Below are positions 1,315 through 15,297 of a stretch of 64,000 nucleotides of DNA, piece after piece. The translations under genes and the position numbers were made by a program. Position 1 is the first letter of the stretch. Each line of letters starts with the position of its first letter. Location of the stretch: the IMG/VR virus record IMGVR_UViG_3300035698_035310, positions 248,001 to 312,000 of that record; one strand, 5' to 3'. Below the pieces are notes generated by a model. The model was not told where the DNA came from, did no database searches, and saw only the letters and a list, made by a program, of their open reading frames with translations.

Positions 1315-1331
1315 CTTCCATAGCAAAATAG

Positions 1332-1717: not shown

Positions 1718-1738
1718 CATTAACAAAAGGGAACGATC

Positions 1739-1954: not shown

Positions 1955-2063
1955 GTGTGTCATAAATGACACAGGTGTGATATAATTATCACACATTGAA
2001 AACTGCCTCGATTGGTGGTGTATTCATACCGATAAAAAAAGATAAGTCAACCTAAAATAATGG

Positions 2064-2116
2064 TTGACTTATCTATTGACTCTGTTATTATACTGGTAGG
2101 GAGGGATGACCTTTTT
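2064..2116 (+). ncRNA. promoter + AGGGAGGGATG tiny-RNA unit, copy 1
   Basis: TTGACT(2064)..TATTAT(2086), AGGGAGGGATGA at 2098-2109, then T-run; no real ORF. Confidence 0.6.
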
Positions 2117-2201
2117 ATAAATAAAATGATTAAAATAAGGTGTTGACTATGATTCACTTATCCTTTATAACTGAACCAACGCTTTAACAAGGAGATTTTT
2201 T

Positions 2202-2432
2202 ATGAGTGTATTCAAAGACGTTCCAAAGATTGTTTGGACTAATTTTTATTTGGTCGTTGATACGGCGGAGTTGGAATATGTCGATAATGGACGCGCTTAT
2301 CGTGTTAAAGATGATTTTTTGAAAGAAGAATATCTTACCGCCAAGTCAGAAGGATGTTGTGGATTTTTCGACACTGTTATCTTTGACGATATTGGTGACG
2401 AATGGATGGTTGGTTGCAATCACGGGCATTGA
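2202..2432 (+). CDS. hypothetical protein
   Basis: ORF with AAGGAG SD. Confidence 0.7.
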   Translation: MSVFKDVPKIVWTNFYLVVDTAELEYVDNGRAYRVKDDFLKEEYLTAKSEGCCGFFDTVIFDDIGDEWMVGCNHGH

Positions 2433-2445
2433 AAGGAATTAAATC

Positions 2446-2652
2446 ATGATACATTGTAGATTCAGGGATATTCGAGGTATGGGCATTGAAGTCGTTAGAG
2501 TCGATCAAGTGCCACCCGTTGATGATATAATTACAATCAATTATGTTATGTATGAAATATTTTCACGCGAATGGTCGGTGATCGATGCTGAAAAAGATAC
2601 GCGAATGCTTGCTTGTGATGTATGGTTAACGGAATATAAAAAATCAAGATAA
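2446..2652 (+). CDS. hypothetical protein
   Basis: ORF with AAGGA SD. Confidence 0.65.
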   Translation: MIHCRFRDIRGMGIEVVRVDQVPPVDDIITINYVMYEIFSREWSVIDAEKDTRMLACDVWLTEYKKSR

Positions 2653-2712
2653 TGTGTTGACTCTGGTTTGATTGTTCTTTATAACTTAATAATCAAACCA
2701 AGGAGAGATACA

Positions 2713-2913
2713 ATGTTAGTTCAATTATCCGGTAAAACAAACCACGGCAAAAACCGTATTCGTGAACATGGTTCGAGTTGGATGGTTCAAGACCTTCCGA
2801 CTGGTGTAATATCAGCAAACCCAATGCCTACCCGCAAAACCCTAGTGTCTGTTTTAACAGGCGCGGAACGTTGGGTGAGTATGACAAACGATAAAGATTT
2901 TATTATCGCTTGA
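2713..2913 (+). CDS. hypothetical phage protein
   Basis: AGGAG SD; GKNRIREHG..W motif. Confidence 0.7.
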   Translation: MLVQLSGKTNHGKNRIREHGSSWMVQDLPTGVISANPMPTRKTLVSVLTGAERWVSMTNDKDFIIA

Positions 2914-2972
2914 CTCTGATTCGATTGTTCTTTATAACTGAATAATCAAAACAACCCCGAAGGATTAAGCAA

Positions 2973-3311
2973 ATGACAGGCATGAATTTTTCAGTATATC
3001 GTAACGGACGCGGCGACACTACTAACGGCGGCGTTTCCAGTTATCACGAGTCGCTGAACGTATGCGCCGAAGGCATTGCGGAAATCTTTGACGCGACGTA
3101 TGACACTCCAGCGGTTGCGCTTGTTATTCGTAATGTTTGCAACACCGCTTTTCCGATCATCGTTCCCATTGACAGCACTGAGGCAGGTGGGACAGAGCGT
3201 TACATGTTCGGCGGTAACTTTGCATGGACTTCCGATTCCCGTGTTTCGGAATGGTTGGAAGAACGCGGATTTACAAACGCCCCAATCAAAATATTTGACC
3301 GACAGGAGTAG
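2973..3311 (+). CDS. hypothetical phage protein
   Basis: DTTNGGVSS, MFGGNF..TSDSR and PIKIFDR.E motifs. Confidence 0.75.
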   Translation: MTGMNFSVYRNGRGDTTNGGVSSYHESLNVCAEGIAEIFDATYDTPAVALVIRNVCNTAFPIIVPIDSTEAGGTERYMFGGNFAWTSDSRVSEWLEERGFTNAPIKIFDRQE

Positions 3312-3314
3312 GCA

Positions 3315-3419
3315 ATGAGAAACGAAGGCACACTCGAAGAACGATATGAAATTTATAAAACCAACGCGGAACTTTTGGGTTGGTACATTAAAACTTTTGA
3401 TGAATGGATGAACAGCTAA
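3315..3419 (+). CDS. 34-aa small protein MRNEGTLEERYEIY...KTFDEWMNS
   Basis: Below track cutoff; AGGAG SD 6 nt upstream; followed by a terminator hairpin (3426-3450). Confidence 0.65.
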   Translation: MRNEGTLEERYEIYKTNAELLGWYIKTFDEWMNS

Positions 3420-3465
3420 AAAGGAGACGGGGTTCGCCCCGTTTTCTTTTAGGTATATATTCCAG

Positions 3466-3518
3466 AAAAAACTCATCCCTCCCTACCGTAATAATACCAC
3501 AATCAACCAAAGAGTCAA
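3466..3518 (-). ncRNA. promoter + AGGGAGGGATG tiny-RNA unit, copy 2
   Basis: Minus strand TTGACT-N16-TATTAT-tacggt-AGGGAGGGATGAGTTTTT (motif 3473-3484). Confidence 0.6.
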
Positions 3519-3529
3519 GCGTTAAAGAC

Positions 3530-3652
3530 AAAAAAAGACCCGCCAATTATTAGCGAGTCTTTTTTCTTTCTCAGGGTACGCCCTCCGATAGCCGAAGGGC
3601 AAAATGAATTCGCTACTTAACCGATCCCTCAATTATTTTCGCTGCATCAGAA
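3530..3652 (-). ncRNA. candidate ~120-nt sRNA A
   Basis: TTGACT(3686-3681)-N17-TATATT promoter, internal hairpin 3580-3600, terminator 3530-3560, no ORF. Confidence 0.55.
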
Positions 3653-3762
3653 GTTATAATATACCACCTACATTAAAAAGAGTCAACATCTATTATTCGC
3701 TTGACTATGGTTCAGTTATGTTCTATGTTTAATCATCAATAACAAATAGAAAGGTTTCAACC

Positions 3763-4308
3763 ATGAAAATCAAACACGCAAAATTCGGACTGGCAGCAAA
3801 GAACATCAAGGTATCTGATACGGATGATGGATATATGTGGAGTGCATCTTTTTATCTTGATGGTGCAAAAATTGGAACTGCACACGATCAAGGGCATGGC
3901 GGCGAAATGAATACACGCGGCATAGATAAAACGGCAATGGCGAAAATCGAAACATATGCGGCAAGTTTGCCACATGATACCACTTACGGACTCGATATGG
4001 CACAAAGTGCCGAAATTGTTCTTGAAGAAAACGCAATGAGTACCGATTCATTCAACAGCGTTCTAAAGAAAACAAAAGCCGCATTGCGAAAGAAAGTTAT
4101 GGCAAAAGGTAATAAAGAAGGAATTTTTCGCACTTGGAAAATTCCCACTGGTATGACTGCTGAAACGAAAATGACTAAACTCCGCGAACAAAAAATCGGT
4201 GAAACGTTTGAATTTTTGAACGAACTACCACCAGAAGATGCAATGGATTTTCTTTATGTGGTTGAACCAGAACCCGATTTTAGCAAGCCGTTTGAACTGG
4301 TAACATAA
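3763..4308 (+). CDS. hypothetical early protein
   Basis: F/W.A..YLDG.KIG.A.D.G.GG motif; own promoter and terminator (4317-4345). Confidence 0.75.
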   Translation: MKIKHAKFGLAAKNIKVSDTDDGYMWSASFYLDGAKIGTAHDQGHGGEMNTRGIDKTAMAKIETYAASLPHDTTYGLDMAQSAEIVLEENAMSTDSFNSVLKKTKAALRKKVMAKGNKEGIFRTWKIPTGMTAETKMTKLREQKIGETFEFLNELPPEDAMDFLYVVEPEPDFSKPFELVT

Positions 4309-4315
4309 GTAAAAC

Positions 4316-4417
4316 AAAGGGTGGGGATATTCCCCATCCTTTTTTACATCCATTAACATCCATAAAATGCTCATCCCTCCCTATCATCACAATACGACCT
4401 AACTGTATCAAAGTCAA
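4316..4417 (-). ncRNA. promoter + AGGGAGGGATG unit, copy 3 (extended, GGA-rich)
   Basis: Motif 4371-4382, followed by AUGGAUGU x2, AAGGAUG and a bidirectional terminator. Confidence 0.6.
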
Positions 4418-4481
4418 CACTTATTTTTCACTTGACATATAATATTTTAATGGTATTATACTTACAGAAAGGACAAAAATT

Positions 4482-4787
4482 ATGAAACGATTATTAGTAA
4501 TAGCCGCAGCATTATTAATTATTTCTTCTAATGTTGCAAAAGCAGAACCAGAAATCACTTATGAGAAATGCACTTCATCGTTGGTGAATGGATTTACATC
4601 TGGTATAACTGCATTCAAATGCAATGACAAATACTCCCTTCCGAGTGCATTCATGTATAAGTGTTCGTATATTGAAAAATATCCTAACAATAAAACACTT
4701 GTGGAAGAATGTGAAATATTTTTGAAATCATTGAAGGCTAAACGCCTCAGTCGATTAATGCGCCAAGGTAAAAAAATATCAATATAA
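4482..4787 (+). CDS. exported Cys-containing protein
   Basis: Signal peptide MKRLLVIAAALL...AKA. Confidence 0.65.
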   Translation: MKRLLVIAAALLIISSNVAKAEPEITYEKCTSSLVNGFTSGITAFKCNDKYSLPSAFMYKCSYIEKYPNNKTLVEECEIFLKSLKAKRLSRLMRQGKKISI

Positions 4788-4797
4788 GGAGTCGACC

Positions 4798-5049
4798 ATG
4801 CGATCCAATGAAGTAATATTTTACAGAACCATAAATATATTTTTTGGTATATATCAATGGTTTACCGAACATGATTTTCTACGTTGTTTCGCGATAGGAT
4901 TGTCATCTTTATATCTTCTTATCGCGTTTATATCGTGGGACTTAATGTGGGTTTCGTTTGTTACAACGGATGCCAGATTAGAATTCGTGTTTTATACGTT
5001 TATTTCCATCGTTATTTCTTGGGCAGTTTGGGGAATTAAATACAAATAA
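4798..5049 (+). CDS. small membrane protein
   Basis: Two hydrophobic segments; AAGGAG SD. Confidence 0.65.
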   Translation: MRSNEVIFYRTINIFFGIYQWFTEHDFLRCFAIGLSSLYLLIAFISWDLMWVSFVTTDARLEFVFYTFISIVISWAVWGIKYK

Positions 5050-5113
5050 TCATTGACACCGCCTATCTTTCTTGCTAAGTTCTAATCATCAATCAAACAA
5101 AAGGAACTGAACC

Positions 5114-5374
5114 ATGAAATTCATATATAAAGATTTAACAGTTTGCGATTTCGATGCGATGTGTGATATGTTCGCGTCAAACTGCGAAGTGGTCGATTAC
5201 GTTTATTATGACGGCGAATACGTTGTCGGTGATATCACCGGTATAACAAGTGACCGCCGTTTCGTGTTAAGTGTGGATGGCGTTGGAACTGAATTGTATT
5301 CTAATGCTGGCACGATGTTCGCCGTTGAAGATTATGGTTCTGAAATGCAGGTTCGTATTATTTCTATAAAATAA
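5114..5374 (+). CDS. hypothetical protein
   Basis: Own promoter and SD. Confidence 0.7.
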   Translation: MKFIYKDLTVCDFDAMCDMFASNCEVVDYVYYDGEYVVGDITGITSDRRFVLSVDGVGTELYSNAGTMFAVEDYGSEMQVRIISIK

Positions 5375-5377
5375 CTG

Positions 5378-5428
5378 TTGACTCTGGTGTAGTTAGTTCG
5401 TATATTAACTACACCAGAACAAAGGAAC
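5378..5428 (+). repeat. promoter stem-loop cassette, exact 51-bp repeat of 13154-13204
   Basis: TTGACTCTGGTGTAGTTAgttcgtatatTAACTACACCAGAACAAAGGAAC. Confidence 0.85.
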
Positions 5429-5433
5429 TGAAT

Positions 5434-5649
5434 ATGCAAAACGCAATCGAACAAGCGACGCACCTCGGAATTCAATCATTTAACTCGGGCGAGTCGCTTG
5501 TGCCATTCCGCAATAATTCATTGATGGATTTGCTGGAAACACAACGAAATCGCTCATGGGATTGCACCCCGATTTTAACTGCATATCAAAACGGATTCAT
5601 AACCGCGCAACAATCTGCGCCCGTACCGGAGGAATTGTTAGTTGCGTAA
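5434..5649 (+). CDS. hypothetical protein
   Basis: Own promoter and SD. Confidence 0.7.
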   Translation: MQNAIEQATHLGIQSFNSGESLVPFRNNSLMDLLETQRNRSWDCTPILTAYQNGFITAQQSAPVPEELLVA

Positions 5650-5715
5650 AAACCCCTTGACTCTGGTTCAGTTAGTTGCTATAACTGTATCAACTTAACC
5701 CGAAAGGAACACACA

Positions 5716-6141
5716 ATGTCTGATGAACTTCCAGTAACACAAACGAAAATCTTGCGCGAAGGTTTTGTCGCATGTTATGAACACAGAATATGGGGAACTG
5801 GATATTTGGACTCCAGCGGCGGAGGTAATTCATTTGTTCAAAAATTGCCCGATAACAAAATTCGTGACGATATTGAAAAGGCTAATAACGACGCCAAAAG
5901 CATCAAATCGATGACAAATTATTATGGCAAAGAACAGGTATCATTCGATACAGTTAAGGTCGTTTATTATATGGAACGTGCCACACACACAGACGTCACG
6001 AATGAAACCGTGTTGAAAAATTTCATCGCTGAACGCGCCTTGAAAAAACTATCCGAGGCCGAAGTCGAAGCACTTCAAGAATATTATCGATCAGCGGCGA
6101 TCAGCGAAGATGATGGTCGCCACGGAATGCAAACCCGATAA
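5716..6141 (+). CDS. hypothetical protein
   Basis: Own promoter and SD; C-terminal AL.KLS..E.EAL motif. Confidence 0.7.
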   Translation: MSDELPVTQTKILREGFVACYEHRIWGTGYLDSSGGGNSFVQKLPDNKIRDDIEKANNDAKSIKSMTNYYGKEQVSFDTVKVVYYMERATHTDVTNETVLKNFIAERALKKLSEAEVEALQEYYRSAAISEDDGRHGMQTR

Positions 6142-6211
6142 TAACTGTTGACAATGGTGTAGTTATATCGTATAACTACATCAACGTTTAACCACTTAAA
6201 GGATTTCAATC

Positions 6212-6748
6212 ATGGGAACTTGGGCTGTACCATTTACCGAAAAACAAGCAAACGAACTTCGTGTTATCATGTCAAAGCATGTTGACGTAAAAGACGCCGC
6301 CGAGGTATTTTATAATTATGTTGGCGATGATGGGTTGTTTGATTTGTTCATTGATACCGAACGCAAAAATGGTTCCGAACAAGATTCTCGTGCGTATGTT
6401 ATGGATCATTTACAAACTTGGTTTGGTGCAACTGGTGATAGCGAACAGGTTCGCAAAGATTGGAATTTTAGCCAAAAATTCGAACCGGGCGCACTTGATA
6501 TCATTCGCCTAATGCTTACCGATTGGCATTTGGATACTACATTTCCAAAATGCACAGAACTAAGCGCGACAAGTATGTTAAACGGTCTTGCGCAAATGTT
6601 GGAGACCGATGGTTGGGATTCATTGAGAGAAACCGGCGTCGAAATTGAACAAATAAGTGTTGCGCTGAATGGCATCATGTATTTAACCCTTGGCGATGGT
6701 AGCGGAAATAGAAAGGCGTTTCGTGTTTCTGTTGTTGACGACGAATAA
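6212..6748 (+). CDS. hypothetical protein
   Basis: Own promoter and SD. Confidence 0.7.
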   Translation: MGTWAVPFTEKQANELRVIMSKHVDVKDAAEVFYNYVGDDGLFDLFIDTERKNGSEQDSRAYVMDHLQTWFGATGDSEQVRKDWNFSQKFEPGALDIIRLMLTDWHLDTTFPKCTELSATSMLNGLAQMLETDGWDSLRETGVEIEQISVALNGIMYLTLGDGSGNRKAFRVSVVDDE

Positions 6749-6814
6749 CCCTTGACACTGGTTCAGTTAATCGCTATAACTTAATCAACGAAACACCAAC
6801 AGAAAGACAATCAA

Positions 6815-7111
6815 ATGTCAATCGGACAAACAATCATTAGCCAGATCAACGAAATCGATTTTTGGGCACGCGCCCGTTGGGGTGTAACCGGTGGAACTGG
6901 ACGAAGACCCATCAAAATCGAGAACGGCGTTAAGTTCAAAACGTGCGGAATAGTTAAGTGGAAAGGTTGGGTTTCAATTACCCTGAACGGTATGGACACT
7001 TATGATATCTCATTCTTTCGTATTCGTGCCGGTGAAATTAGGGTTGACAAGGTGGTTAATAATGTTTACAATGACCAACTTGTAACAATCATTGACGAAC
7101 AGGTTGGTTAA
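6815..7111 (+). CDS. hypothetical phage protein
   Basis: TI..QI...V.ITL...DTYDI.F...VYNDQL pattern. Confidence 0.7.
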   Translation: MSIGQTIISQINEIDFWARARWGVTGGTGRRPIKIENGVKFKTCGIVKWKGWVSITLNGMDTYDISFFRIRAGEIRVDKVVNNVYNDQLVTIIDEQVG

Positions 7112-7112
7112 A

Positions 7113-7283
7113 ATGGATATACTTTTAAGTTTTTTCTTCGGATACATATATTTAATATGTTTTATGGTTAGAATATCATGGATTGATACATTTCCAATTA
7201 GGAATTGGAAAGATTTGATCTTGCTTCAAACTTCCACTTATCGCCATTACGACGGCACGGAATCTAAATCTAGGAAATACTAA
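7113..7283 (+). CDS. small membrane protein
   Basis: Hydrophobic N-terminus; stop overlaps the next start. Confidence 0.5.
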   Translation: MDILLSFFFGYIYLICFMVRISWIDTFPIRNWKDLILLQTSTYRHYDGTESKSRKY

Positions 7284-7546
7284 TGACTGAATATCGCATT
7301 GTAACAACACATGATGAAACCAAAGTGACGATTGACGAGCAAACTGCGAGTCAGCTTGCATTGGCTTCAAATGGTGAATGGACACACGAAACCTTTACGA
7401 AGGCTGGTAAATGCAGAGTCCTTGTATTTACTGAAAACCATTCATTGGCTGAACGCGACTATTGGGGCAACGCCAAAATGGTTGTATATATCAATCCTAA
7501 CGATAAAATGGTTGTTATCGAAAAAGACTTGACACTGTATCGCTAA
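7283..7546 (+). CDS. hypothetical protein
   Basis: ORF with AGGA SD. Confidence 0.65.
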   Translation: MTEYRIVTTHDETKVTIDEQTASQLALASNGEWTHETFTKAGKCRVLVFTENHSLAERDYWGNAKMVVYINPNDKMVVIEKDLTLYR

Positions 7547-7591
7547 GACGCTAAGTTCTAATCATCGAAACACAAACAGAAAGCAAAACCA

Positions 7592-7873
7592 ATGACCGAC
7601 GAAACCGAAACCCCCGAATTGATTTCAGTTACAGAATTTTACAAACGGACGGTTAGTTTCCGTGAAAAATTCGGAACCAAACTCGAGCCGGAAATGTATG
7701 CAAATCTCAGCAAGATGTATACGATATCCTACTTTCGAATGGATAACAAAGACCCAATGTGGGACGTCGCCGTTGAGATCTATCAATCAACTATCGATGA
7801 ATTTCATCGCCGTATGGAAATGATGGGATACCCCGACATCACTGAATATGAAATGGTCGAAGACAATGGCTGA
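7592..7873 (+). CDS. hypothetical protein
   Basis: Own promoter. Confidence 0.65.
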   Translation: MTDETETPELISVTEFYKRTVSFREKFGTKLEPEMYANLSKMYTISYFRMDNKDPMWDVAVEIYQSTIDEFHRRMEMMGYPDITEYEMVEDNG

Positions 7874-8072
7874 TTCAGAACGCGACTGTTTGCTGGTGTT
7901 CGCTGGTGAAACTCATTATCCCCTTGGTGGTTACGAGGACTGTAAAGGTATGTTCACCAGCGAAGCGCAAGCAATGGAACACATCGCAAAAATACATTGT
8001 GAATGGTGGCAAGTGTGTCGCATGGATGAACTAATTGGTATGGTTCTTATTAATAGCGGCAAACGAAAATAA
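7866..8072 (+). CDS. hypothetical phage protein
   Basis: LLVFAG..HYP.GG..D.KG.F motif. Confidence 0.65.
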   Translation: MADSERDCLLVFAGETHYPLGGYEDCKGMFTSEAQAMEHIAKIHCEWWQVCRMDELIGMVLINSGKRK

Positions 8073-8136
8073 GTGCTTGACAGTGGTTCAGTTAATTGCT
8101 ATGTTAAATCATCGAAACGAACAAAGGATGACCCAG

Positions 8137-8382
8137 ATGAGAAAAACAATTTTTGCTAACGTTGATCGCAAGCCTCACCAAGCACCCGGCGGCGAGTTTG
8201 AAGTTTTCGACACCGCCACTTCGATGACTATGACGACGGGTATGGGTTGGAAGGCAGCATGGGAAGAATTCGATAAACTCCACGTTGACGGCGATAACTT
8301 AGACGTTCGCCCAAGCACCCCAATTCCTGTTGTTGGTTTCGTTGGTAATATCAATCCGTTATTGTTGACCGAATTTCGTTAA
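8137..8382 (+). CDS. hypothetical protein
   Basis: Start reassigned downstream of the promoter at 8076. Confidence 0.65.
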   Translation: MRKTIFANVDRKPHQAPGGEFEVFDTATSMTMTTGMGWKAAWEEFDKLHVDGDNLDVRPSTPIPVVGFVGNINPLLLTEFR

Positions 8383-8491
8383 AAGTTTCATGGTAAACTA
8401 AGGGTTTTCCCCTACCCGGTGAATTGAGCGCAAGTTCTTCATCGGGATTTTTTTGTCTTGACATTATTAAAACGTCGTGGTATAGTTAAAT

Positions 8492-8605
8492 CTAAATAGG
8501 GTGAAAGTTCAGTTAGACCTAGTTCAAGTAGCCCGAACATTATAAAGATGAATAATTCTTAAACAAACATAAAGGGAAACACCGGAATGATTCCGGTGTT
8601 TTTTT
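8492..8605 (+). ncRNA. candidate ~115-nt sRNA B
   Basis: TTGACA(8458)-N17-TATAGT(8481) promoter, terminator AAACACCGGAatgaTTCCGGTGTTTTTTT, no ORF. Confidence 0.6.
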
Positions 8606-8614
8606 GTCTGGAAC

Positions 8615-8652
8615 CCATAGCATCAACAGGTTTTTTCCTATAGCATCTATGG
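8615..8652. promoter_or_regulatory. 38-bp palindromic operator-like site, copy 2
   Basis: CCATAGCATCAACAGGTTTTTTCCTATAGCATCTATGG, 10 bp upstream of a -35 box. Confidence 0.6.
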
Positions 8653-8720
8653 AATTTTCCCCTTGACTCCTATGGCTTTACTTGCTATGGTTCTATCAAT
8701 TCAAACGAAAGGACAATATT

Positions 8721-9167
8721 ATGATTACCGGAAGTCGCGCACGAATATTGGCAGAAACCACTTGGGGAACTGGTGGGACTCACTCTGCAAGAACCAATCG
8801 CAAAGGTGCATTCTATTATTCGTGTTCAGGACATGGTGGATACATCGTCGACGGTAATGCCCTAACCGTTGCGGAGCGTGATCACATAGACCGATTTAAA
8901 AAACCTGAATATGTATGGGCAATTATCAACGATGAAACCAGTGCGGTTCGTAAAACATCGAACCCGTTTTCAACTAAACGTTTCTTTGCCCATATGCGCG
9001 TAGGTGAAAGACTGGACAAAAACTATCCGATTTATTATTTTGAAGAAGATTGCGACTGGTCAATCCTTGAAAAGTTCACTGACATTCGCGCAGGTGGTAA
9101 GGATACCGACGCAGATACAATTCTCAATATATTCTATCGCTGGTGCCATGATCGCGAGGCGGCATAA
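8721..9167 (+). CDS. DUF7007-like protein
   Basis: SCSGHGG and FEEDCDW motifs. Confidence 0.55.
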   Translation: MITGSRARILAETTWGTGGTHSARTNRKGAFYYSCSGHGGYIVDGNALTVAERDHIDRFKKPEYVWAIINDETSAVRKTSNPFSTKRFFAHMRVGERLDKNYPIYYFEEDCDWSILEKFTDIRAGGKDTDADTILNIFYRWCHDREAA

Positions 9168-9221
9168 AGTGATCAAAGAGGTTACATTTATGTAACCTCT
9201 TTGACTAACTTAAAATAGTTC

Positions 9222-9276
9222 TTGCATTATCGATTGACTCGTGTATGATCATATCAGGGAGGGATCAGCGTTTTTT
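9222..9276 (+). ncRNA. promoter + AGGGAGGGATC unit, copy 4
   Basis: TTGCAT-N16-TATGAT, motif 9256-9267, T-run. Confidence 0.55.
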
Positions 9277-9417
9277 ATGGCGCAAGATTATTACAAAATT
9301 AAGTGAAACAAAGTAATAAAATAATGCATTATTCGGTTGACCATGTTACAGTTATTTGCTATATTTAAATTGTTCCAAGGCACTAACGCCTAACACAGAT
9401 TGAAAGGGAACCACAAA

Positions 9418-9894
9418 ATGTTAAACCGCAACCAAGTAAATGAGATTTTAGCCCCGCTTAACGGAAACACGTTTATCGGCTTAACCGCCACAACGATTCC
9501 AAAATTAACTGGCGGCAAGAAAAACGATATGCAGGGTGAAATCACCAAACGCACCGTTTCTGTTGTTCAGGTTTTCCAGAACAAATCCACGAACGGATAT
9601 GAAAACAAGCGCTTGAAAGCGAATCCAGACTTCAAATTGGGTGATCGCCCTTGGGGAACACGCGTTAAAGGAACACCGTTCATTGAACATAAAGGCGCGG
9701 ATTACATGGAAGTAATTTTCGTAAGCACCGATTCAGTTGATTATTTTCGCAATGGCGAACCAATCGAAAAAGATCAAATCGTTGGTTTGCCTGCCAGCCG
9801 CCCCGCTGGTGATACGGATAATGTAATTATTCGAACATATAAACTGGAAAGCATCGATTCACTTCGGGCGTTTGGGGCGGAATACACCGCCTAA
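9418..9894 (+). CDS. hypothetical phage protein
   Basis: GGKKN.MQG, R.WG.R..GTPFIEHKG..Y motifs; terminator 9910-9943. Confidence 0.75.
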   Translation: MLNRNQVNEILAPLNGNTFIGLTATTIPKLTGGKKNDMQGEITKRTVSVVQVFQNKSTNGYENKRLKANPDFKLGDRPWGTRVKGTPFIEHKGADYMEVIFVSTDSVDYFRNGEPIEKDQIVGLPASRPAGDTDNVIIRTYKLESIDSLRAFGAEYTA

Positions 9895-9953
9895 CCGATT
9901 CATACAAGGAAAAGAAAGTCAAGAGAAATCTTGACTTTCTTTTCGATTCATTT

Positions 9954-9968
9954 GTTCACGTTTTGTTC
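9954..9968. promoter_or_regulatory. alphaproteobacterial-type LexA box
   Basis: GTTC-acgtttt-GTTC (GTTC-N7-GTTC) at the -10 position of TTGACT 9931-9936. Confidence 0.45.
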
Positions 9969-9984
9969 TTATAAGATGATACCC

Positions 9985-10041
9985 AAAAAAAACTCATCCC
10001 TCCCTGATACAAAATTACCACGTTTACCCCATACGAGTCAA
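9985..10041 (-). ncRNA. promoter + AGGGAGGGATG unit, copy 5
   Basis: Motif 9994-10005, -35 at 10036-10041. Confidence 0.6.
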
Positions 10042-10057
10042 CACTTAATTTATTTTT

Positions 10058-10117
10058 ATTTAGGGGGTTGACTCATCTGATGCCTACCTTTATAACTACA
10101 AATAGAAACCAACCACA
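10058..10117 (+). repeat. 60-bp exact direct repeat (promoter cassette), second copy 10553-10612
   Basis: ATTTAGGGGGTTGACTCATCTGATGCCTACCTTTATAACTACAAATAGAAACCAACCACA occurs twice. Confidence 0.9.
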
Positions 10118-10132
10118 TAAGGAATTGCCCAC

Positions 10133-10435
10133 ATGAAAAACACTTACATAAACGCAGTATTCTTTAATGTATCTAACGAAAACGGTTTGGATACGTTTGC
10201 CGATAAGGTCCAGAAAGCATTGGATTGCGAATTGTTTTATTATGAAAATGGTAGGGAAATAGGCGTGGTTACGTGTGGCGGTTCCCCATCTGGCAAGGAT
10301 TACCAGTTTGGCATGGGTGGTGGCAACTTTGATTTGGATCATAACGTGGTGCTATATTCCGAACCCGCTACCGTGTTCGTTATGTTCGATGACGCTAGTG
10401 GTAGCAGGTGCGTTCAGCCAGTAAGCCACCGATAA
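10133..10435 (+). CDS. hypothetical protein
   Basis: Own promoter and SD. Confidence 0.7.
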   Translation: MKNTYINAVFFNVSNENGLDTFADKVQKALDCELFYYENGREIGVVTCGGSPSGKDYQFGMGGGNFDLDHNVVLYSEPATVFVMFDDASGSRCVQPVSHR

Positions 10436-10467
10436 GAAAAGAAATCGGCGCGGGGGCAAATTAGCCC

Positions 10468-10523
10468 TTGCGCCTTTTTTTGTTTCGTGGTATAAAATCC
10501 GTAGGGGGGGATGAGCCGATTTT
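10468..10523 (+). ncRNA. promoter + AGGGGGGGATG unit, copy 6 (variant)
   Basis: TTGCGC-N17-TATAAA, motif 10503-10514. Confidence 0.5.
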
Positions 10524-10630
10524 ATCATCAAAATTTATTTTAATAATAGTGCATTTAGGGGGTTGACTCATCTGATGCCTACCTTTATAACTACAAATAG
10601 AAACCAACCACAACCCCGAAGGAACTTATC

Positions 10631-11008
10631 ATGCAAAAAGTAATCGCCCACATCGAAGCAATCAACGCAGCAACCGGCAGCACTTGGGTTTTGAACGCGG
10701 ATCATTGGGCTGGCTACGAAATAACCACACCCGAAGCGTTTGATCGTTATGTGCTTACCACAAGCATTTGGGATGCATACAAATATGGCTTGGGCTTTAA
10801 GCCACACGGCATGATGATGGAAGCAATGAGCATGGAACAGTTGGAACGCGAACTGGAAAGCGTTCGCGCTTCAATCGATGCGAACGCCGAACACGAAGCC
10901 GAACGGGAACGGGTGAACAATTTCACTTGGCAAGAACATCTTGCTTGCGCCAACATGCCAGCAATGGCAAACGACTCCCCCTTCGCAGTGTTGCAGGGGG
11001 TGCGATAA
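10631..11008 (+). CDS. hypothetical phage protein
   Basis: HW..Y.ITT...F.RY....I.D.YK...G.KP motif. Confidence 0.7.
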   Translation: MQKVIAHIEAINAATGSTWVLNADHWAGYEITTPEAFDRYVLTTSIWDAYKYGLGFKPHGMMMEAMSMEQLERELESVRASIDANAEHEAERERVNNFTWQEHLACANMPAMANDSPFAVLQGVR

Positions 11009-11060
11009 CCAACCGAAAGGGGCGGGGGATTTTCCCCCGTTTTTTCGCGCCAGCAATTCC

Positions 11061-11117
11061 AAAAAAAAGACATCCCTCCCTATGGTGATATTAGCACTAT
11101 TGCCCAAACAGAGTCAA
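11061..11117 (-). ncRNA. promoter + AGGGAGGGATG unit, copy 7
   Basis: Motif 11070-11081, -35 at 11112-11117. Confidence 0.6.
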
Positions 11118-11271
11118 CACTTATTTTCGCCCCCAAATTTCAGGCATCACCCAATCTTACCACGTTTTCGAATTACAAGTCAACCCCCTATTTTAATTCA
11201 TTTAAGGGGTTGACTCTGTTTGGGTTGGGTAGTAATATCCCTTTATCAACTTAACAAAAGGAAACAAACAC

Positions 11272-11661
11272 ATGGATTCATTAAACGTTTTTGCGGATTC
11301 GAAAGTTGGCGATGGTGCAACGATCAATATGTATAGCGATTCAAAGGCTTGCACGATTGTGGCGATTAGTGATAAGCGTATCACGGTTCAATATGACGAT
11401 GTTAAATTGTTGAACGGTGCGAAATCTGGCGAACCCGATGCACTGGTTTTTGATGTAGGCGGATTTTCCGCACACTGTTCAGGTCGCCAGCGTTGGGAAA
11501 CAACACCAAACCCCGAAGGCGGCAAGGTGACTTATTCCCTGCGCAAGTGGAACGACTACAAAAATGAACCAGTTATGCGGTGGGCACCAGTTGGCAGCAA
11601 ACGCCACGAAGGTTCAGGCTTAACCGAAGGAAGGCATCACCACTACGATTTCAATTTCTAG
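11272..11661 (+). CDS. hypothetical phage protein
   Basis: VGDGAT...YSD..A.TI start and GR..HYDFNF end. Confidence 0.75.
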   Translation: MDSLNVFADSKVGDGATINMYSDSKACTIVAISDKRITVQYDDVKLLNGAKSGEPDALVFDVGGFSAHCSGRQRWETTPNPEGGKVTYSLRKWNDYKNEPVMRWAPVGSKRHEGSGLTEGRHHHYDFNF

Positions 11662-11724
11662 GCACAAGGAAAAAGGAGAGTCAAGAGAAATCTTGACTTT
11701 TCTTTTTTTATTTTTTCCGCCGCC

Positions 11725-11779
11725 AAAAAAAGGTCATCCCTCCCTACCACCATAATACACTATTCGAACAACGAGTCAA
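11725..11779 (-). ncRNA. promoter + AGGGAGGGATG unit, copy 8
   Basis: Motif 11734-11745, -35 at 11774-11779. Confidence 0.6.
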
Positions 11780-11785
11780 GACTAT

Positions 11786-11918
11786 AAACGGGGAACCACG
11801 AATGATTCCCCGTTTTCTTTTCTATAATGGCTTGGCTTGCCGTGTCGCCAGACGATTAGATCATGATGTCAAATCCTTCCGTTAATTTTTATCCGGTGTT
11901 TGAACTTACTCTCTACAC
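11786..11918 (-). ncRNA. candidate ~130-nt sRNA C
   Basis: TTGACA(11947-11942)-N16-TATTAT promoter, terminator 11786-11816, no ORF. Confidence 0.55.
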
Positions 11919-12020
11919 CATAATACATTAAACAAAATAGATGTCAACACTTATTTTAGGGGTTGACACTAACAATCGAAACCGCTATAACTGTATCAAC
12001 TTAACCAAAAGGAACACCCA

Positions 12021-12230
12021 ATGTCAAACCAAGCATTTGTAGTTTATAACGGCAAAATCACAGTCAAGACTGAGATTTACGACGGCGGTTTATATTTCGC
12101 CGACACCGTGAAAGAAGTGACACAACGCTTGCGCGATTGCGAGACGTTGGTTGTTAAATCTGGCAGTGAACGCGACCTTAAGAAAATCGTCACCGTCGCC
12201 GACCTTTTCACAAACAATCCCCAAGGATAA
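12021..12230 (+). CDS. hypothetical protein
   Basis: Own promoter and SD. Confidence 0.65.
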   Translation: MSNQAFVVYNGKITVKTEIYDGGLYFADTVKEVTQRLRDCETLVVKSGSERDLKKIVTVADLFTNNPQG

Positions 12231-12234
12231 GACA

Positions 12235-12729
12235 ATGTCAAATCCCAAACACATAAACGATTTTTGCAAAGAACTTCGCGCACTTATGGAAAAGCACGGA
12301 ATTGATTCATTAGGTGTCGAAATTGAGGGCGACACACACGGCATAAGTGAACAATTCGTTATCGATGATAATCAAAATAAAACACACGTGATCGACGGAT
12401 TTTCAAGTTATTTGGATAAATCAGATTTGCGTGATTATATCGAAGTAACCAGCGAATTATTGAAACGCGACGACGTTCAATTTGTTATCAACGATTTGCA
12501 AGATGATGGAGAAGAAAGTTCCGCTAAACTTTTTGAAGACTATATCATCAAAGCGGAAAACAACGGCTTAAACATCGACCAAGCATTCCAAGGCACTATC
12601 GCACTAAGGGAAGCAATGAATATTATGGGAAGTTATTTCGACGCCCTGAATACTAATAATCTTGTTTTTGTTAATCAAATCAATGCGATTGATTCAGCAA
12701 TGCTACATTATAAAGATAGTTTAAAATAA
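12235..12729 (+). CDS. hypothetical protein
   Basis: Start reassigned to the ATG after AAGGA. Confidence 0.7.
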   Translation: MSNPKHINDFCKELRALMEKHGIDSLGVEIEGDTHGISEQFVIDDNQNKTHVIDGFSSYLDKSDLRDYIEVTSELLKRDDVQFVINDLQDDGEESSAKLFEDYIIKAENNGLNIDQAFQGTIALREAMNIMGSYFDALNTNNLVFVNQINAIDSAMLHYKDSLK

Positions 12730-12790
12730 CCGTTGACACTGGTACATGAAACCGATATAACTGTATCAACTTAACCAAAAGGATCATATC

Positions 12791-13150
12791 ATGGAAACAA
12801 TATCGCGGTTTTATGCGCACGCTGGCAAAATTGCCATAACGATTGGCGCGGGTGATACTACATATATCACCACAGACCAAGCCGAAATGATCGGCGCTAA
12901 ATTATCTGAACTTGCCAGTCAAGTGAAAAACGGCAATCATTCGACTACGGTTGAAGTTCCCGCAACTGAAGAACAAATGAAACGGATGCGTGAGGATGCG
13001 CCCGAAATTTATAAAATCATTCGTTGTTATCGCAATGGCAATAGCCCCCGCACAATTGCACGTAGTGTAACGATTTTCGAAGCGCAAGAACATTGTAGCG
13101 ATCCATCAACCTCAAACACCAAATATTTTGATGGATATGAGTTGAAATAG
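12791..13150 (+). CDS. hypothetical phage protein
   Basis: C-terminal YKIIR.Y...EAQ.HC.DP.T...FDGY motif. Confidence 0.7.
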   Translation: METISRFYAHAGKIAITIGAGDTTYITTDQAEMIGAKLSELASQVKNGNHSTTVEVPATEEQMKRMREDAPEIYKIIRCYRNGNSPRTIARSVTIFEAQEHCSDPSTSNTKYFDGYELK

Positions 13151-13210
13151 GTCTTGACTCTGGTGTAGTTAGTTCGTATATTAACTACACCAGAACAAAG
13201 GAACAAACAA

Positions 13211-13351
13211 ATGTCAAACGCTGAAATGTATCTCGATTGGGTTAACAATTTTTTAACTGTTGCACGGTTCGCCGAATATTACAATATCTCCGAGACCGAA
13301 GCTCTTGCCGTGATCGAAAAAGGTCGCATCGACCACCACGCAAATCTGTAA
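13211..13351 (+). CDS. 46-aa small phage protein
   Basis: Below track cutoff; MYLDWVNNFLTVARFAEYY; own promoter and SD. Confidence 0.7.
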   Translation: MSNAEMYLDWVNNFLTVARFAEYYNISETEALAVIEKGRIDHHANL

Positions 13352-13369
13352 ACAACGAAAGACAAACCC

Positions 13370-13669
13370 ATGCAAGTCACAACCGAACAACTCGAAACTT
13401 TCCTAACTAAAGCGCAAGCACATGTAAACGCTGATTACAGCACTAACTTTGAAGGCGATGCGCCAACACTTTCGATTGACCCAATGACCGAACGATCTAA
13501 GTACGCCAAAATCGTGAAAGATACCGGTCAACGTTCATTGTGGGGTTTCGTTGAACTATCAACCGGCAATCTGTTGACAGGCAGTTGGAAAGCACCACGC
13601 AAATCAAAATCAACATGCGGTCATATTGACGAGCCATTCTTACCACGGACTCGCTGGATGAGTGTATAA
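13370..13669 (+). CDS. hypothetical phage protein
   Basis: Y.KIV....S.WGFV....G.L....WKAP motif. Confidence 0.7.
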   Translation: MQVTTEQLETFLTKAQAHVNADYSTNFEGDAPTLSIDPMTERSKYAKIVKDTGQRSLWGFVELSTGNLLTGSWKAPRKSKSTCGHIDEPFLPRTRWMSV

Positions 13670-13735
13670 TAAACCCTTGACTCTGATTCAGTTATTCTTT
13701 ATAACTGAATAATCAGAACAACGAAAGAAAATCCA

Positions 13736-13912
13736 ATGGTAGGCAAACTTAATTTTCGTGTATTCCAAGATGGCAAACAACACATTGTTTCCGCACGTAG
13801 CATCGTGGTTCGTTTTGAACAAGGTGCATTCATATCAGCTAACATAAGACAAGATAGTGCCGAATATCTTGAAGCATGTGAAGCAATGGTTAAACATGAT
13901 ATGGGCGAATGA
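13736..13912 (+). CDS. 58-aa hypothetical protein
   Basis: Below track cutoff; follows promoter at 13677. Confidence 0.55.
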   Translation: MVGKLNFRVFQDGKQHIVSARSIVVRFEQGAFISANIRQDSAEYLEACEAMVKHDMGE

Positions 13913-13913
13913 T

Positions 13914-14093
13914 ATGACTGAAATTGCACAAGGCACTGAAGTCAAATTAAAATTCATTAACGGCGAAAATCGTTATGGCGCACTTATGGATAATCGAAAA
14001 AAACATTTGATTTATCGCCCCGTTGATGGTATCAATACCATTGTTTTTCATAAAGACTTGAAAAGTGTTGCACCCGTATATATTCCATCTTAA
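13914..14093 (+). CDS. small hypothetical protein
   Basis: ORF following the previous stop. Confidence 0.55.
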   Translation: MTEIAQGTEVKLKFINGENRYGALMDNRKKHLIYRPVDGINTIVFHKDLKSVAPVYIPS

Positions 14094-14122
14094 TAAAAAC
14101 AACAGCCGGAGTCACTTAGGTG

Positions 14123-14176
14123 TTGACTCCGGCATTTTTCCTGCTAATATACTATCAGGGAGGGATGAGTAAAATT
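14123..14176 (+). ncRNA. promoter + AGGGAGGGATG unit, copy 9
   Basis: -35 embedded in terminator hairpin GCCGGAGTCA..TGACTCCGGC; motif 14157-14168. Confidence 0.55.
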
Positions 14177-14284
14177 CGCCCCGAAAAAAACTTTCATTTT
14201 ATTTCATTTAAGGGGTTGACTCTGATCGGGTTGGGTAGTAATATCACTACATCAAAACAAACCAACAACCCAAGGAACAAAACC

Positions 14285-14869
14285 ATGGCAACCGATAAAA
14301 ATGGCTTAACACTTTCAAACGCTTCTGATTCTGGTTATAAATTTGTAACTACTTTGTTTGAAGGACCGCTGGCTGGAAAGTTCGTCGCCTTCGCGGATGT
14401 TAAAACCGCCGAATTGCAACGCCTGAACAAATCTCACGCGCACGGAATAAACGGTTTCTTTGGATTCAAAAACGTTGTTCCGTTGGGCGTTTTCGATGAT
14501 GTGCGCGACGCCGCATACGTTGGACAAACATTCCACGCAGGGAACGCAGATGACCGCGACGACAACCTTGCCGAATTATACGCTGGCAATGAGTCAGTTA
14601 TCCCTAAATCATTGACCGATTGGGATAATCCCGCCGATGTTACTTCAATGAAAAAAGCCGCAACCCGCGCAAAAACCCGACGCATGGGTAAAACATTCGA
14701 TGCAAAAAAAGCCGAGACCGCAATCGATAAGTTTGCCAACAATTTCAAATCATACAAAATCGGTAACATGGATGTCCGCGTAATCTTGGAACGCATGAAA
14801 GAACTGTTTGATAACGGAACAAGCTTAACCCTTTCCGCCGAAACCGTTTGCTCCGATTACCAGCGATAA
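14285..14869 (+). CDS. hypothetical early protein
   Basis: Start reassigned to the ATG after AAGGA; LG.FDD.RDAAY motif loosely AP2-like. Confidence 0.7.
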   Translation: MATDKNGLTLSNASDSGYKFVTTLFEGPLAGKFVAFADVKTAELQRLNKSHAHGINGFFGFKNVVPLGVFDDVRDAAYVGQTFHAGNADDRDDNLAELYAGNESVIPKSLTDWDNPADVTSMKKAATRAKTRRMGKTFDAKKAETAIDKFANNFKSYKIGNMDVRVILERMKELFDNGTSLTLSAETVCSDYQR

Positions 14870-14930
14870 CCCTTGACTCTGGTGTAATTGATAAGTATAA
14901 TTGATTACACCAGAACAAAAGGAATTTAAC

Positions 14931-15203
14931 ATGGATAAACGCGATGTGATTGTAATTTGCGTTGGCAGTGCCGCCGATGATATACGCGCACTTAATCACG
15001 CAACAAACTCCGCAGTTCTAGTCGTTGAAGATAAACCCGCAATTCACGAAATGGCATTGATGGATGATATATTTTTAACCGATGAAGCAAAAGATATGTT
15101 TGTGCTTGAATTAATCGAAGACGCGTTGCCAAAGAATTTTCTAAGTGAACCAAAACCCCGAAAGGCTTGGAAAAACGAATTCGAAAATCTAGGTCGTAAA
15201 TAA
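14931..15203 (+). CDS. hypothetical protein
   Basis: Own promoter and SD. Confidence 0.65.
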   Translation: MDKRDVIVICVGSAADDIRALNHATNSAVLVVEDKPAIHEMALMDDIFLTDEAKDMFVLELIEDALPKNFLSEPKPRKAWKNEFENLGRK

Positions 15204-15227
15204 ATCAAAACCAGAGTCACTTAGGTG

Positions 15228-15282
15228 TTGACTCTGGATTTCTTTCTGCTATTATACTGTCAGGGAGGGATGACTTTATTTT
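15228..15282 (+). ncRNA. promoter + AGGGAGGGATG unit, copy 10
   Basis: -35 embedded in hairpin CCAGAGTCA..TGACTCTGG; motif 15262-15273. Confidence 0.6.
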
Positions 15283-15297
15283 ATTCCCGCACTTATA

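Follow-up and report, generated by a model that had tools for sequence, protein, structure and literature searches.

Orphan early promoters predicted to produce AGGGAGGGAUG RNAs in a large uncultured phage and its relatives

The 64,000-nucleotide stretch analysed here (the window; positions 248,001 to 312,000 of IMGVR_UViG_3300035698_035310) is part of a roughly 570-kb uncultured phage. All genes here are on the + strand and have an AAGGAG ribosome-binding site, and the intergenic gaps contain repeated copies of a promoter followed by the sequence AGGGAGGGATG. Five of the copies in the window point backwards into the bidirectional terminator of the preceding gene, predicting RNAs of about 65-100 nt, while the other five are in the sense orientation and lie upstream of a second, motif-less promoter that serves the gene. 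The features are listed in Table 1.

Table 1. Promoter-motif units in the window and the terminators predicted to end their transcripts. Motif positions are those of matches with at most 1 mismatch.
Feature	Coordinates	Strand	Motif match	Predicted +1	Details
Sense unit 1	2064..2120	+	2098	2098	-35 TTGACT at 2064-2069; -10 TATTAT at 2086-2091; motif 2098-2108, then ACCTTTTT; no terminator; second motif-less promoter (about 2143-2171) and gene 2202-2432 follow
Antisense unit 2	3461..3518	-	3474	3484	-35 at 3518-3513; -10 at 3496-3491; motif 3484-3474, then a T-run; fires towards the terminator of + strand gene 3315-3419
Bidirectional terminator hairpin	3424..3442	-			Should end the RNA of unit 2 at about 65 nt
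Antisense unit 3	4359..4417	-	4372	4382	Back-to-back with gene promoter 4432-4459
Terminator hairpin	4322..4336	-			After gene 3763-4308; should end the RNA of unit 3 at about 70 nt
Sense unit 4	9222..9279	+	9256	9256	Variant with ATC in place of ATG; second promoter 9337-9365 and gene 9418-9894 follow; L170:192 in a relative occupies the same position and has ATG
Antisense unit 5	9982..10041	-	9995	10005
Palindromic bidirectional terminator	9909..9944	.			GTCAAG-N6-CTTGAC flanked by A and T runs, after gene 9418-9894; should end the RNA of unit 5 at about 100 nt; same palindrome recurs at 11668-11709 and in L002
Sense unit 6	10468..10526	+	10503	10503	Variant AGGGGGGGATG; weaker promoter (TTGCGC-17-TATAAA) overlapping terminator 10447-10474; second promoter at about 10563-10591 and gene 10631-11008 follow
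Antisense unit 7	11058..11117	-	11071	11081	ATGTCT, then a T-run; further motif-less minus-strand promoter just upstream at 11183-11154
Terminator hairpin	11024..11037	.			After gene 10631-11008; U-tract weak in the antisense direction; RNA of unit 7 should be about 65-70 nt if it stops here
Antisense unit 8	11722..11779	-	11735	11745
Palindromic bidirectional terminator	11668..11709	.			After gene 11272-11661; should end the RNA of unit 8 at about 75 nt
Sense unit 9	14123..14180	+	14157	14157	Second promoter 14216-14244 and gene 14285-14869 follow
Sense unit 10	15228..15285	+	15262	15262	Second promoter 15455-15482 drives the ArdC-N/metallopeptidase gene 15513-16433

A first-pass annotation of the sequence had described these sites as ten dispersed, gene-less promoters that fire into a shared motif. 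To test this description, we searched the window for AGGGAGGGATG with at most 1 mismatch, and found 10 matches, whereas dinucleotide shuffles gave 0.27 expected, with a maximum of 2. The minus-strand positions given in the first-pass annotation were off by one base. All 10 copies were intergenic relative to the + strand genes and began exactly 6 nt after a TAnnnT hexamer with a TTGAC-like -35 box 16-18 nt upstream, such that the first A of the motif is the predicted transcription start of a sigma-70-type promoter. A T-run followed in 8 of 10 copies, and no copy was found beyond 15272 in the window. However, the family was not confined to the 13 kb originally noted, since 7 more copies were present upstream of the window, giving 17 copies within about 52 kb of small early genes. 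In addition, the five + strand copies are not strictly gene-less. Each lies upstream of a second promoter and a gene with no canonical terminator detected in between, although a short hairpin after 15262 may be one.

We next examined how strongly the units are conserved. Among the 17 copies of this phage, mean pairwise identity was 98% in the motif, 75% in the -10 hexamer, 60% in +12..+23, 37% in the spacer and 26-34% in the flanks. The motif is under much stronger constraint than the promoter itself, and the conserved block extends to about +23 (AGGGAGGGATGAGyTTTTTyTGG). Fragments of diverged relatives kept promoter plus motif while spacers and flanks differed, even though the shared genes of these relatives were only 66-71% identical at the DNA level and their fragments ranged from 36% to 51% GC. 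About 39 distinct copies showed only 5 single-base variants, and GGAU at positions 7-10 was invariant. The motif lay 6 nt (rarely 7) after the -10 box in these copies, while the -35/-10 spacer varied from 16 to 18 nt, as a requirement at the RNA 5' terminus would predict. Uncoupling of the motif from the promoter in relatives, which the first-pass annotation had considered a refutation of its reading, was therefore not observed.

The orientation of the 17 copies was about half sense and half antisense (8 and 9, by our count). Furthermore, orientation next to homologous genes flipped between the window and another phage, L134, so the units act independently of their neighbours. Discrete short RNAs are predictable only for the antisense copies, which meet terminators 41-94 nt downstream, and the sense copies may simply be upstream tandem promoters of mRNAs. 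The ATG of the motif opened no conserved reading frame, no Rfam family matched, and no promoter-linked copy was found in 185,579 bacterial genomes. To our knowledge this layout has not been described before, and its function is unproven.

The first-pass annotation had also proposed that the RNAs pair with the 16S rRNA tail, with one bulge, and had noted that GGAGG lies only 1 nt from the AUG. Both points were supported. The proposed pairing, 10 bp with one bulge, was the predicted minimum-energy duplex, scoring -13.6 kcal/mol, whereas none of 75 phage gene starts was stronger than -8.8 kcal/mol, and their median was -5.5. All 9 GGGAGGG sequences in the window belonged to these units, and no complementary target was present elsewhere in the window. 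In contrast, an alphaproteobacterial host was not established, as the DNA polymerase was 45% identical to that of a Sinorhizobium phage but 42% to those of Yersinia, Serratia and Vibrio phages. The four proposed roles (anti-Shine-Dalgarno decoys, sponges for C/U-rich small RNAs, CsrA/RsmA decoys and RNA polymerase traps) could not be told apart.

We favour the hypothesis that each unit is an autonomous early transcription unit, read by the host sigma-70-type RNA polymerase, whose product is a short RNA that is not productively translated and that binds the 30S subunit or another GGA-binding host factor as a decoy. The only conserved part of the predicted RNA is its extreme 5' end, pppAGGGAGGGAUGAG(C/U)UUUUU(C/U)UGG, which packs three recognition elements of a translation start into 22 nt, namely an unusually strong Shine-Dalgarno sequence, an AUG, and a U-tract of the kind that ribosomal protein S1 binds. 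Because the AUG lies only 1 nt after GGAGG, it cannot reach the P site, and the RNA would therefore bind the 3' tail of 16S rRNA in free 30S subunits without yielding a protein. Made from at least 17 strong promoters per genome, such RNAs could occupy the anti-Shine-Dalgarno sequence of host ribosomes early in infection, which would disfavour mRNAs that depend on a strong Shine-Dalgarno sequence, while the phage's own genes have weak ones. The bound ribosome would also shield the 5' end of the RNA from decay.

This reading remains tentative (probability of roughly 0.3), since the start site, RNA lengths, abundance, 30S binding and any effect on translation are inferred without transcript or binding data and for an unknown host. 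Pairing with the anti-Shine-Dalgarno sequence alone would tolerate many variants, such as AAGGAGG, and it does not explain why G2, G8, A9 and U10 never change. Two of the five natural variants (AGGCAGGG and AGGGAAGG) hit the Shine-Dalgarno core and weaken the duplex to -8.6 and -9.3 kcal/mol. A decoy would also compete with the phage's own early genes, which use AAGGAG, and half of the family may only provide long mRNA leaders, because the sense copies have no terminator before the next promoter. As in sibling small-RNA families with conserved seeds (for example Qrr1-5, LhrC1-5 and the cuckoo/CcsR RNAs) and prophage anti-sRNAs such as AgvB, several paralogous short transcription units share one short conserved single-stranded sequence while the rest diverges. 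Here, however, the copy number is much higher, the seed is at the very first nucleotide, no target is known, and the genes are in a lytic-type giant phage.

It is possible, although less likely, that the motif is a 5'-terminal stabiliser, either a STAB-SD-like element that recruits a ribosome to the 5' end or a weak 5' hairpin between the purine run and the U-run. It would protect transcripts that lack a nearby ribosome-binding site, namely the long leaders made from the upstream tandem promoters and antisense RNAs covering gene ends. Shine-Dalgarno-like polypurine stabilisers at or near the RNA 5' end that are not used to start a protein are known from Bacillus, including the cryIIIA leader and a phage SP82 early RNA (Agaisse and Lereclus 1996 and Hue et al. 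1995, listed in PMC3997798; hbs in PMC5737220). Consistent with this idea, the motif sits at the predicted 5' end and is strongly complementary to 16S rRNA, and the gene promoters here give very short leaders, so they would not need such a handle. The consensus can also fold into an 8-bp hairpin rich in G-U pairs with no 5' overhang, at -4.4 kcal/mol. However, this hairpin is weak and absent in several copies, and if pairing with U were the constraint, G-to-A changes would be tolerated, yet the Gs almost never vary. Orientation flips next to homologous genes, and half of the copies have no downstream gene to stabilise. Known stabilisers are single elements in front of an mRNA they protect, whereas here there are at least 17 copies, with an adjacent AUG and U-tract.

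Similarly possible is that the function lies in the DNA or in the act of transcription, rather than in a diffusible RNA. The motif might be an operator for a phage regulator overlapping +1, RNA polymerase might be parked at intergenic sites as a roadblock or insulator between early units, or G-rich transcripts might form R-loops or hybrid quadruplexes that prime replication, for which T4 origins using promoter-derived R-loops would offer a precedent. The units sit in intergenic gaps in either orientation, two G3 tracts lie on the non-template strand and are followed by a T-run, and a convergent pair of units about 48-58 bp apart, flanking an A+T-rich spacer, is kept in three phages (L007, L155 and L150). 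However, the motif is not palindromic and is more uniform than sets of operator sites usually are, two variants break a G3 tract, and a roadblock would not need a conserved transcribed sequence. Seventeen sites clustered in 52 kb of a 570-kb genome would also be an odd distribution for origins. Lambda PR'/6S RNA and the face-to-face promoters of phages P2 and 186 likewise involve strong phage promoters whose default product is a short terminated RNA, or convergent promoters a few tens of bp apart. In the present case, there are no genes behind the terminators on the antisense strand that anti-termination could turn on, and no structured nut/put-like RNA or sigma-dependent pause element was seen.

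Somewhat more doubtful is the idea that the RNAs are sponges for a host GGA-binding regulator of the CsrA/RsmA type, or for C/U-rich host small RNAs that target Shine-Dalgarno sequences. The motif holds two overlapping ANGGANG elements, all five variants spare the second GGA, and positions 5-11 match ARGGAUG of the SELEX consensus RUACARGGAUGU (PMC4347634). Nevertheless, the CsrA reading fails three of its defining features. The ACA that is 100% conserved in the SELEX consensus is absent, GGA is not in a hairpin loop, and the two GGAs, only 4 nt apart, are probably too close for one dimer to bridge. This reading also does not explain the fixed 5'-terminal position or the U-tract, and it is not clear that the host has CsrA. 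The multi-site sponge RNAs CsrB/CsrC and RsmX/Y/Z are likewise non-coding RNAs built around GGA motifs that mimic ribosome-binding sites in order to titrate a factor, but they carry many GGA sites in hairpin loops on one long RNA, whereas here there is one 5'-terminal unstructured site per RNA and multiplicity comes from gene copies.

It is unlikely that the ATG is used, with the units being minigenes encoding fMet-Ser-Phe-Phe(-Trp...) that act through translation itself, for example by peptidyl-tRNA drop-off as with lambda bar minigenes, or by ribosome-dependent read-through of the terminator. The ATG is kept in about 37 of 39 copies, the two exceptions being ATC and ATT, codon 2 is Ser or Thr encoded by AGC, AGT, TCT, ACC or ACT, and Phe-Phe follows in most copies. 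Eleven of 36 frames were 5 codons or fewer, and 10 had exactly 4, seven of them reading MSFF-stop. However, the 1-nt gap between GGAGG and AUG is far below the spacing that the real genes of the phage use, frame length is otherwise unconstrained, from 4 to over 100 codons, with frames running antisense through genes, and the partners in the convergent pairs lack the Phe codons.

Least likely is that the units are promoter cassettes kept as substrates for homologous recombination that shuffles early genes, as proposed for the PeSL cassettes (promoter-early stem-loop) of T4-type phages (PMC2839356, PMC4122927), with no function for the RNA. Although gene content between units differs between relatives, identity among copies is confined to functional positions and about 22 nt of transcribed sequence, the unrelated spacers mean that gene conversion does not explain the pattern, and recombination between inverted copies, which make up half of the family, would invert genes, which is not seen. 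The phage is nevertheless a large myovirus-like one with a T4-type family B DNA polymerase, and like PeSLs, the units are many copies of a host sigma-70-type early promoter, associated with stem-loop terminators and scattered through a variable region of small orphan early genes. PeSLs precede and drive orphan genes and are not reported to carry an invariant transcribed motif, whereas the units described here appear to drive no gene of their own, occur in both orientations, and conserve +1..+23 more strongly than the promoter.

To determine how often the motif occurs, we searched the window for AGGGAGGGATG with at most one mismatch and found 10 sites, all between 2098 and 15272, whereas dinucleotide shuffles gave 0.27 expected. 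These are the ten sites of the first-pass annotation, although its minus-strand coordinates are shifted by one base. Two of them are variants, one reading ATC and the other AGGGGGGGATG. In every copy a TAnnnT hexamer ends exactly 6 nt before the first A, in most copies it is preceded by TG, and a TTGAC-type -35 box lies 16-18 nt further upstream. On the basis of the usual geometry of sigma-70-type promoters, the first A is the predicted transcription start. The conserved block continues beyond the ATG, giving AGGGAGGGATGAGyTTTTTyTGG. A resemblance to T7-type promoters (TAGGGAG) was rejected, because the upstream 17 nt are not conserved.

The IMG/VR contig 3300035698_035310, in which the window occupies positions 248001-312000, is 359 kb long. 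The same sequence occurs in two independent assemblies of 570,750 and 570,549 bp, and thus the phage genome is probably about 570 kb, which ranks it among the very large ones, and the IMG/VR record is partial. The family B DNA polymerase is 45% identical to that of Sinorhizobium phage Phosso, 43% identical to that of Agrobacterium phage Atu_ph07, and 42% identical to those of roughly 350-kb Yersinia, Serratia, Erwinia and Vibrio phages. Near and distant DNA searches of 50,697 phage records found no match. Cultured or deposited relatives were also examined directly, and neither the motif nor the layout was present in Sinorhizobium phage Phosso at 95-145 kb, or in uncultured phage LR756508 at 425-475 kb.

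Pattern scans of IMG/VR showed that the family is larger than the ten copies first noted. Seven more promoter-linked copies were found in the same genome, upstream of the window, making 17 copies within about 52 kb, and no other IMG/VR contig had more than one promoter-linked match. Among the 17 copies, mean pairwise identity was 98% in the motif, 75% in the -10 hexamer, 60% in +12..+23, 37% in the promoter spacer and 26-34% in the flanks. The motif is thus more constrained than the promoter that drives it. Recent duplication or gene conversion was rejected, because the spacers and flanks are at background identity.

The same phage plus 16 fragments of diverged relatives were also recovered. 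These relatives keep promoter, register and motif with unrelated spacers, while shared genes are 66-71% identical at the DNA level and 33-75% at the protein level, and the GC content of the fragments ranges from 36% to 51%. Relaxed searches of those fragments found further copies that had not been used for the ascertainment, three of which are single-base variants (AGGGAAGG, AGGCAGGG and ...ATT). Over about 39 distinct copies there are 5 single-base variants, and GGAU at positions 7-10 never changes. The motif A is the 7th nt after the -10 box in nearly all copies. Some units keep their position, as L128:824 corresponds to L002:432 and L170:192 corresponds to window 9256 (L numbers denote the sequences in which copies were found). 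Furthermore, a convergent pair of units flanking an A+T-rich spacer is kept in three phages (L007, L155 and L150), in which each transcript would fold into a 13-14 bp hairpin that sequesters the motif; possible roles are transcriptional interference, double-stranded RNA, or an origin. In one group of relatives (L135, L137, L151 and L150), the T-run is followed, at +24..+60 of the units, by A+T-rich palindromes built from GTTAAC/CTTAAG, such as GTTAACGCGCGTTAAC and CTTAAGGTTAAGAGTTAACCTTAAG, which could be hairpins or protein-binding sites. Attempts to enlarge the contigs of the relatives by protein look-up, or to find relatives in IMG/VR through early proteins, returned only the same contigs.

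We next examined the gene context of the units. All credible genes in 1-18 kb are on the + strand, with AAGGAG a normal distance before the start codon, and each has its own motif-less promoter that gives a leader of about 20 nt. Five window units are on the minus strand, where they sit between the terminator of one gene and the promoter of the next. They fire back into that bidirectional terminator, which lies 41-94 nt downstream, and should therefore give RNAs of roughly 65-100 nt, although a terminator with a usable U-tract is present for 4-5 of the antisense window copies and for none of the sense copies. The five + strand units each lie upstream of the gene's own promoter, which starts roughly 45-190 nt after the unit's predicted start site. 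No canonical terminator was detected in between, although a short hairpin after 15262 may be one, and these units may simply add a longer mRNA isoform. Across the genome, by our count from the gene orientations, 8 units are sense and 9 antisense. Next to the orthologue of gene 11272-11661 and the more distant homologue (33% identity) of gene 14285-14869, the unit orientation in relative L134 is the opposite of that in the window. The units therefore behave as autonomous modules rather than as leaders of particular genes.

Coordinates of the motif units and of other features in the window, the contig and the relatives
Sequence	Coordinates	Strand	Feature	Remarks
Window	2098	+	Motif unit (predicted start)	
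Window	3484	-	Motif unit (predicted start)	Unit spans 3518-3461
Window	4382	-	Motif unit (predicted start)	
Window	9256	+	Motif unit (predicted start)	Variant, ATC
Window	10005	-	Motif unit (predicted start)	
Window	10503	+	Motif unit (predicted start)	Variant, AGGGGGGGATG
Window	11081	-	Motif unit (predicted start)	
Window	11745	-	Motif unit (predicted start)	
Window	14157	+	Motif unit (predicted start)	
Window	15262	+	Motif unit (predicted start)	
Contig 3300035698_035310	211170 to 240302		Seven further promoter-linked copies	Upstream of the window
L007	5189-5237		Convergent pair of motif promoters	Predicted starts 48 nt apart
L155	1184-1232		Convergent pair of motif promoters	Predicted starts 48 nt apart
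L150	316-374		Convergent pair of motif promoters	Predicted starts 58 nt apart
Window	3527-3686	-	Orphan unit without the motif	Promoter 3686-3658 (TTGACT-17-TATATT); bidirectional terminator at about 3527-3565
Window	11785-11947	-	Promoter without the motif and predicted RNA	Promoter 11947-11920; hairpin 11785-11815
Window	9909-9944 and 11668-11709		Palindromic terminator	GTCAAG-N6-CTTGAC flanked by A-rich and T-rich arms
L002	~370-400		Same palindromic terminator	
Window	5378-5420 and 13154-13196		Gene promoters with shared leader start	TTGACT-17-TATATT aactac ACCAGAACAAAGGA
Window	15513-16433 and 17164-17595		ArdC-N plus zincin metallopeptidase (MPTase-PolyVal) and ART-PolyVal ADP-ribosyltransferase domains	Separate genes
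Window	29139-29864, 42267-43916, 61615-63570		GIY-YIG homing endonuclease, carbamoyltransferase, two tandem DHH phosphoesterase paralogues	Replication and structural part of the window

The minus strand also carries an orphan unit and a further promoter, both without the motif. In the first, which lies immediately upstream of motif unit 3518-3461, the promoter is followed by about 120 nt and a bidirectional terminator, and no Rfam family matches. The second gives a predicted RNA of about 110-130 nt that contains GGAAGGA followed 9 nt later by ATG ATC TAA, a two-codon minigene reminiscent of lambda bar.

To investigate what the transcript could be, we first considered translation from the ATG. 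It opens frames of 4 to over 100 codons that share only Met-Ser-Phe-Phe, and many run antisense through real genes. GGAGG is 1 nt from the ATG, far closer than in the phage's genes. A conserved protein is excluded and efficient translation is unlikely. No common secondary structure exists. The purine run can pair only weakly with the U-run, giving a 5' hairpin rich in G-U pairs at -4.4 kcal/mol in the commonest form, which is absent in several copies. An Rfam scan of bases 1-20000 at E-value up to 1 gave only two sub-threshold chance hits, and no tRNA gene was found. Within the 64-kb window, the complement of the motif occurs nowhere apart from the units themselves. A scan of 185,579 bacterial genomes gave 13 hits, none with the TTGAC-type promoter (one meets the bare TAnnnT criterion by chance), and hence revealed no host homologue and no clue to the host. 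The predicted duplex of the motif with the 16S 3' tail was the one proposed in the first-pass annotation, 10 bp with one bulge, at -13.6 kcal/mol. Among 75 gene starts of the window the strongest was -8.8 and the median -5.5, and all nine GGGAGGG in the window are these units.

The constant distance to the -10 box, while the -35/-10 spacer varies, fits a requirement for the motif at the very 5' end of an RNA. Together with orientation independence and the lack of a reading frame, this favours a product that acts in trans. The first-pass annotation, which inferred abundant early short RNAs with a conserved 5' seed, is partly supported. We tentatively favour (probability about 0.3) a mimic of a translation-initiation region, with a very strong Shine-Dalgarno sequence, an AUG that cannot reach the P site, and a U-tract for S1. 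Such an RNA would bind 30S subunits unproductively, and at least 17 strong promoters could make enough of it to matter. However, this mechanism is inferred, Shine-Dalgarno pairing does not explain base-by-base invariance, two natural variants hit the Shine-Dalgarno core, and the sense copies may not be short RNAs at all. It is also possible, though less likely, that the phage floods the cell with tiny RNAs that plug the anti-Shine-Dalgarno tail of host 16S rRNA, an RNA-based way to reprogramme ribosomes towards its own mRNAs, which have weak Shine-Dalgarno sequences, encoded as a dispersed multigene family of orphan promoters.

Other explanations appear less likely. The motif might be a 5' stabiliser handle, since STAB-SD and SP82-type stabilisers share the 5' polypurine logic, at a 5' end that is predicted here, and the complementarity to the 3' end of 16S rRNA. 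However, these protect a downstream mRNA, whereas five of the 10 window copies, and 9 of 17 in the genome by our count, point away from genes into terminators. A DNA-level or transcription-dependent role, as an operator, a roadblock, or an R-loop origin, is similarly doubtful, the last being suggested by the conserved convergent pair. A sponge for CsrA or C-rich small RNAs is somewhat less likely still. The motif has two GGAs, the second within the invariant GGAU, and matches ARGGAUG of the SELEX consensus RUACARGGAUGU (PMC4347634). However, the ACA that is 100% conserved in that consensus is absent, the corresponding positions reading GGA, and the hairpin presentation and spaced multiple sites of the family are lacking, as there is no consistent fold and the two GGAs are 4 nt apart at an unstructured 5' end. 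A translated minigene of the lambda bar type is unlikely in view of the 1-nt spacing and because only 11 of 36 frames have 5 codons or fewer. A promoter-proximal anti-termination site of the nut/put/Q type is not supported, as we found no conserved RNA structure and no minus-strand genes behind the terminators. PeSL-like recombination cassettes are the least likely of the readings, because each gene has its own motif-less promoter and the motif units are additional or inverted.

Nevertheless, PeSL cassettes of T4-type phages are the closest described layout, and they likewise consist of a repeated sigma-70-like early promoter in a variable region of small orphan genes; no Pfam family passed its cut-off in 10 early proteins of this phage. 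Unlike these units, PeSL cassettes drive genes and are not reported to have a conserved transcribed motif. The palindromic terminator that recurs after different early genes is a PeSL-like composite, as its arms are back-to-back copies of the -35 sequence CTTGAC. Two gene promoters also share an identical -35 hexamer, spacer length, -10 hexamer, discriminator and first 14 transcribed nt, suggesting duplicated promoter-leader cassettes in front of different genes. Sibling small-RNA families and early promoter cassettes are both known, but we found no description of dispersed orphan promoters with an invariant first 11 nt, and a full-text search for the motif returned only unrelated papers among those listed; there is a real chance that the arrangement is something new. 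If the RNAs are made as predicted, this would be the largest sibling family of small RNA genes known in any phage, with members defined by an invariant sequence at the first nucleotide of the transcript. It would point to host takeover by RNA rather than by protein, aimed at the ribosome or another factor that reads Shine-Dalgarno-like sequences. Even if the RNA turns out to be inert, the units show that promoter cassettes in giant-phage early regions can be selected for what they transcribe rather than for the genes they drive.

PHROG and Pfam annotation of the rest of the window showed ordinary replication and structural genes and no obvious RNA-binding partner. The early region (1-18000) is 38-44% GC, whereas the rest of the window (18000-64000) is 32-41% (mostly 32-37%), and GC skew changes sign near 10-20 kb. 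At the edge of the early region, the ArdC-N plus zincin metallopeptidase and the ADP-ribosyltransferase domains are encoded as separate genes, while in other elements these domains occur in injected polyvalent anti-defence proteins.
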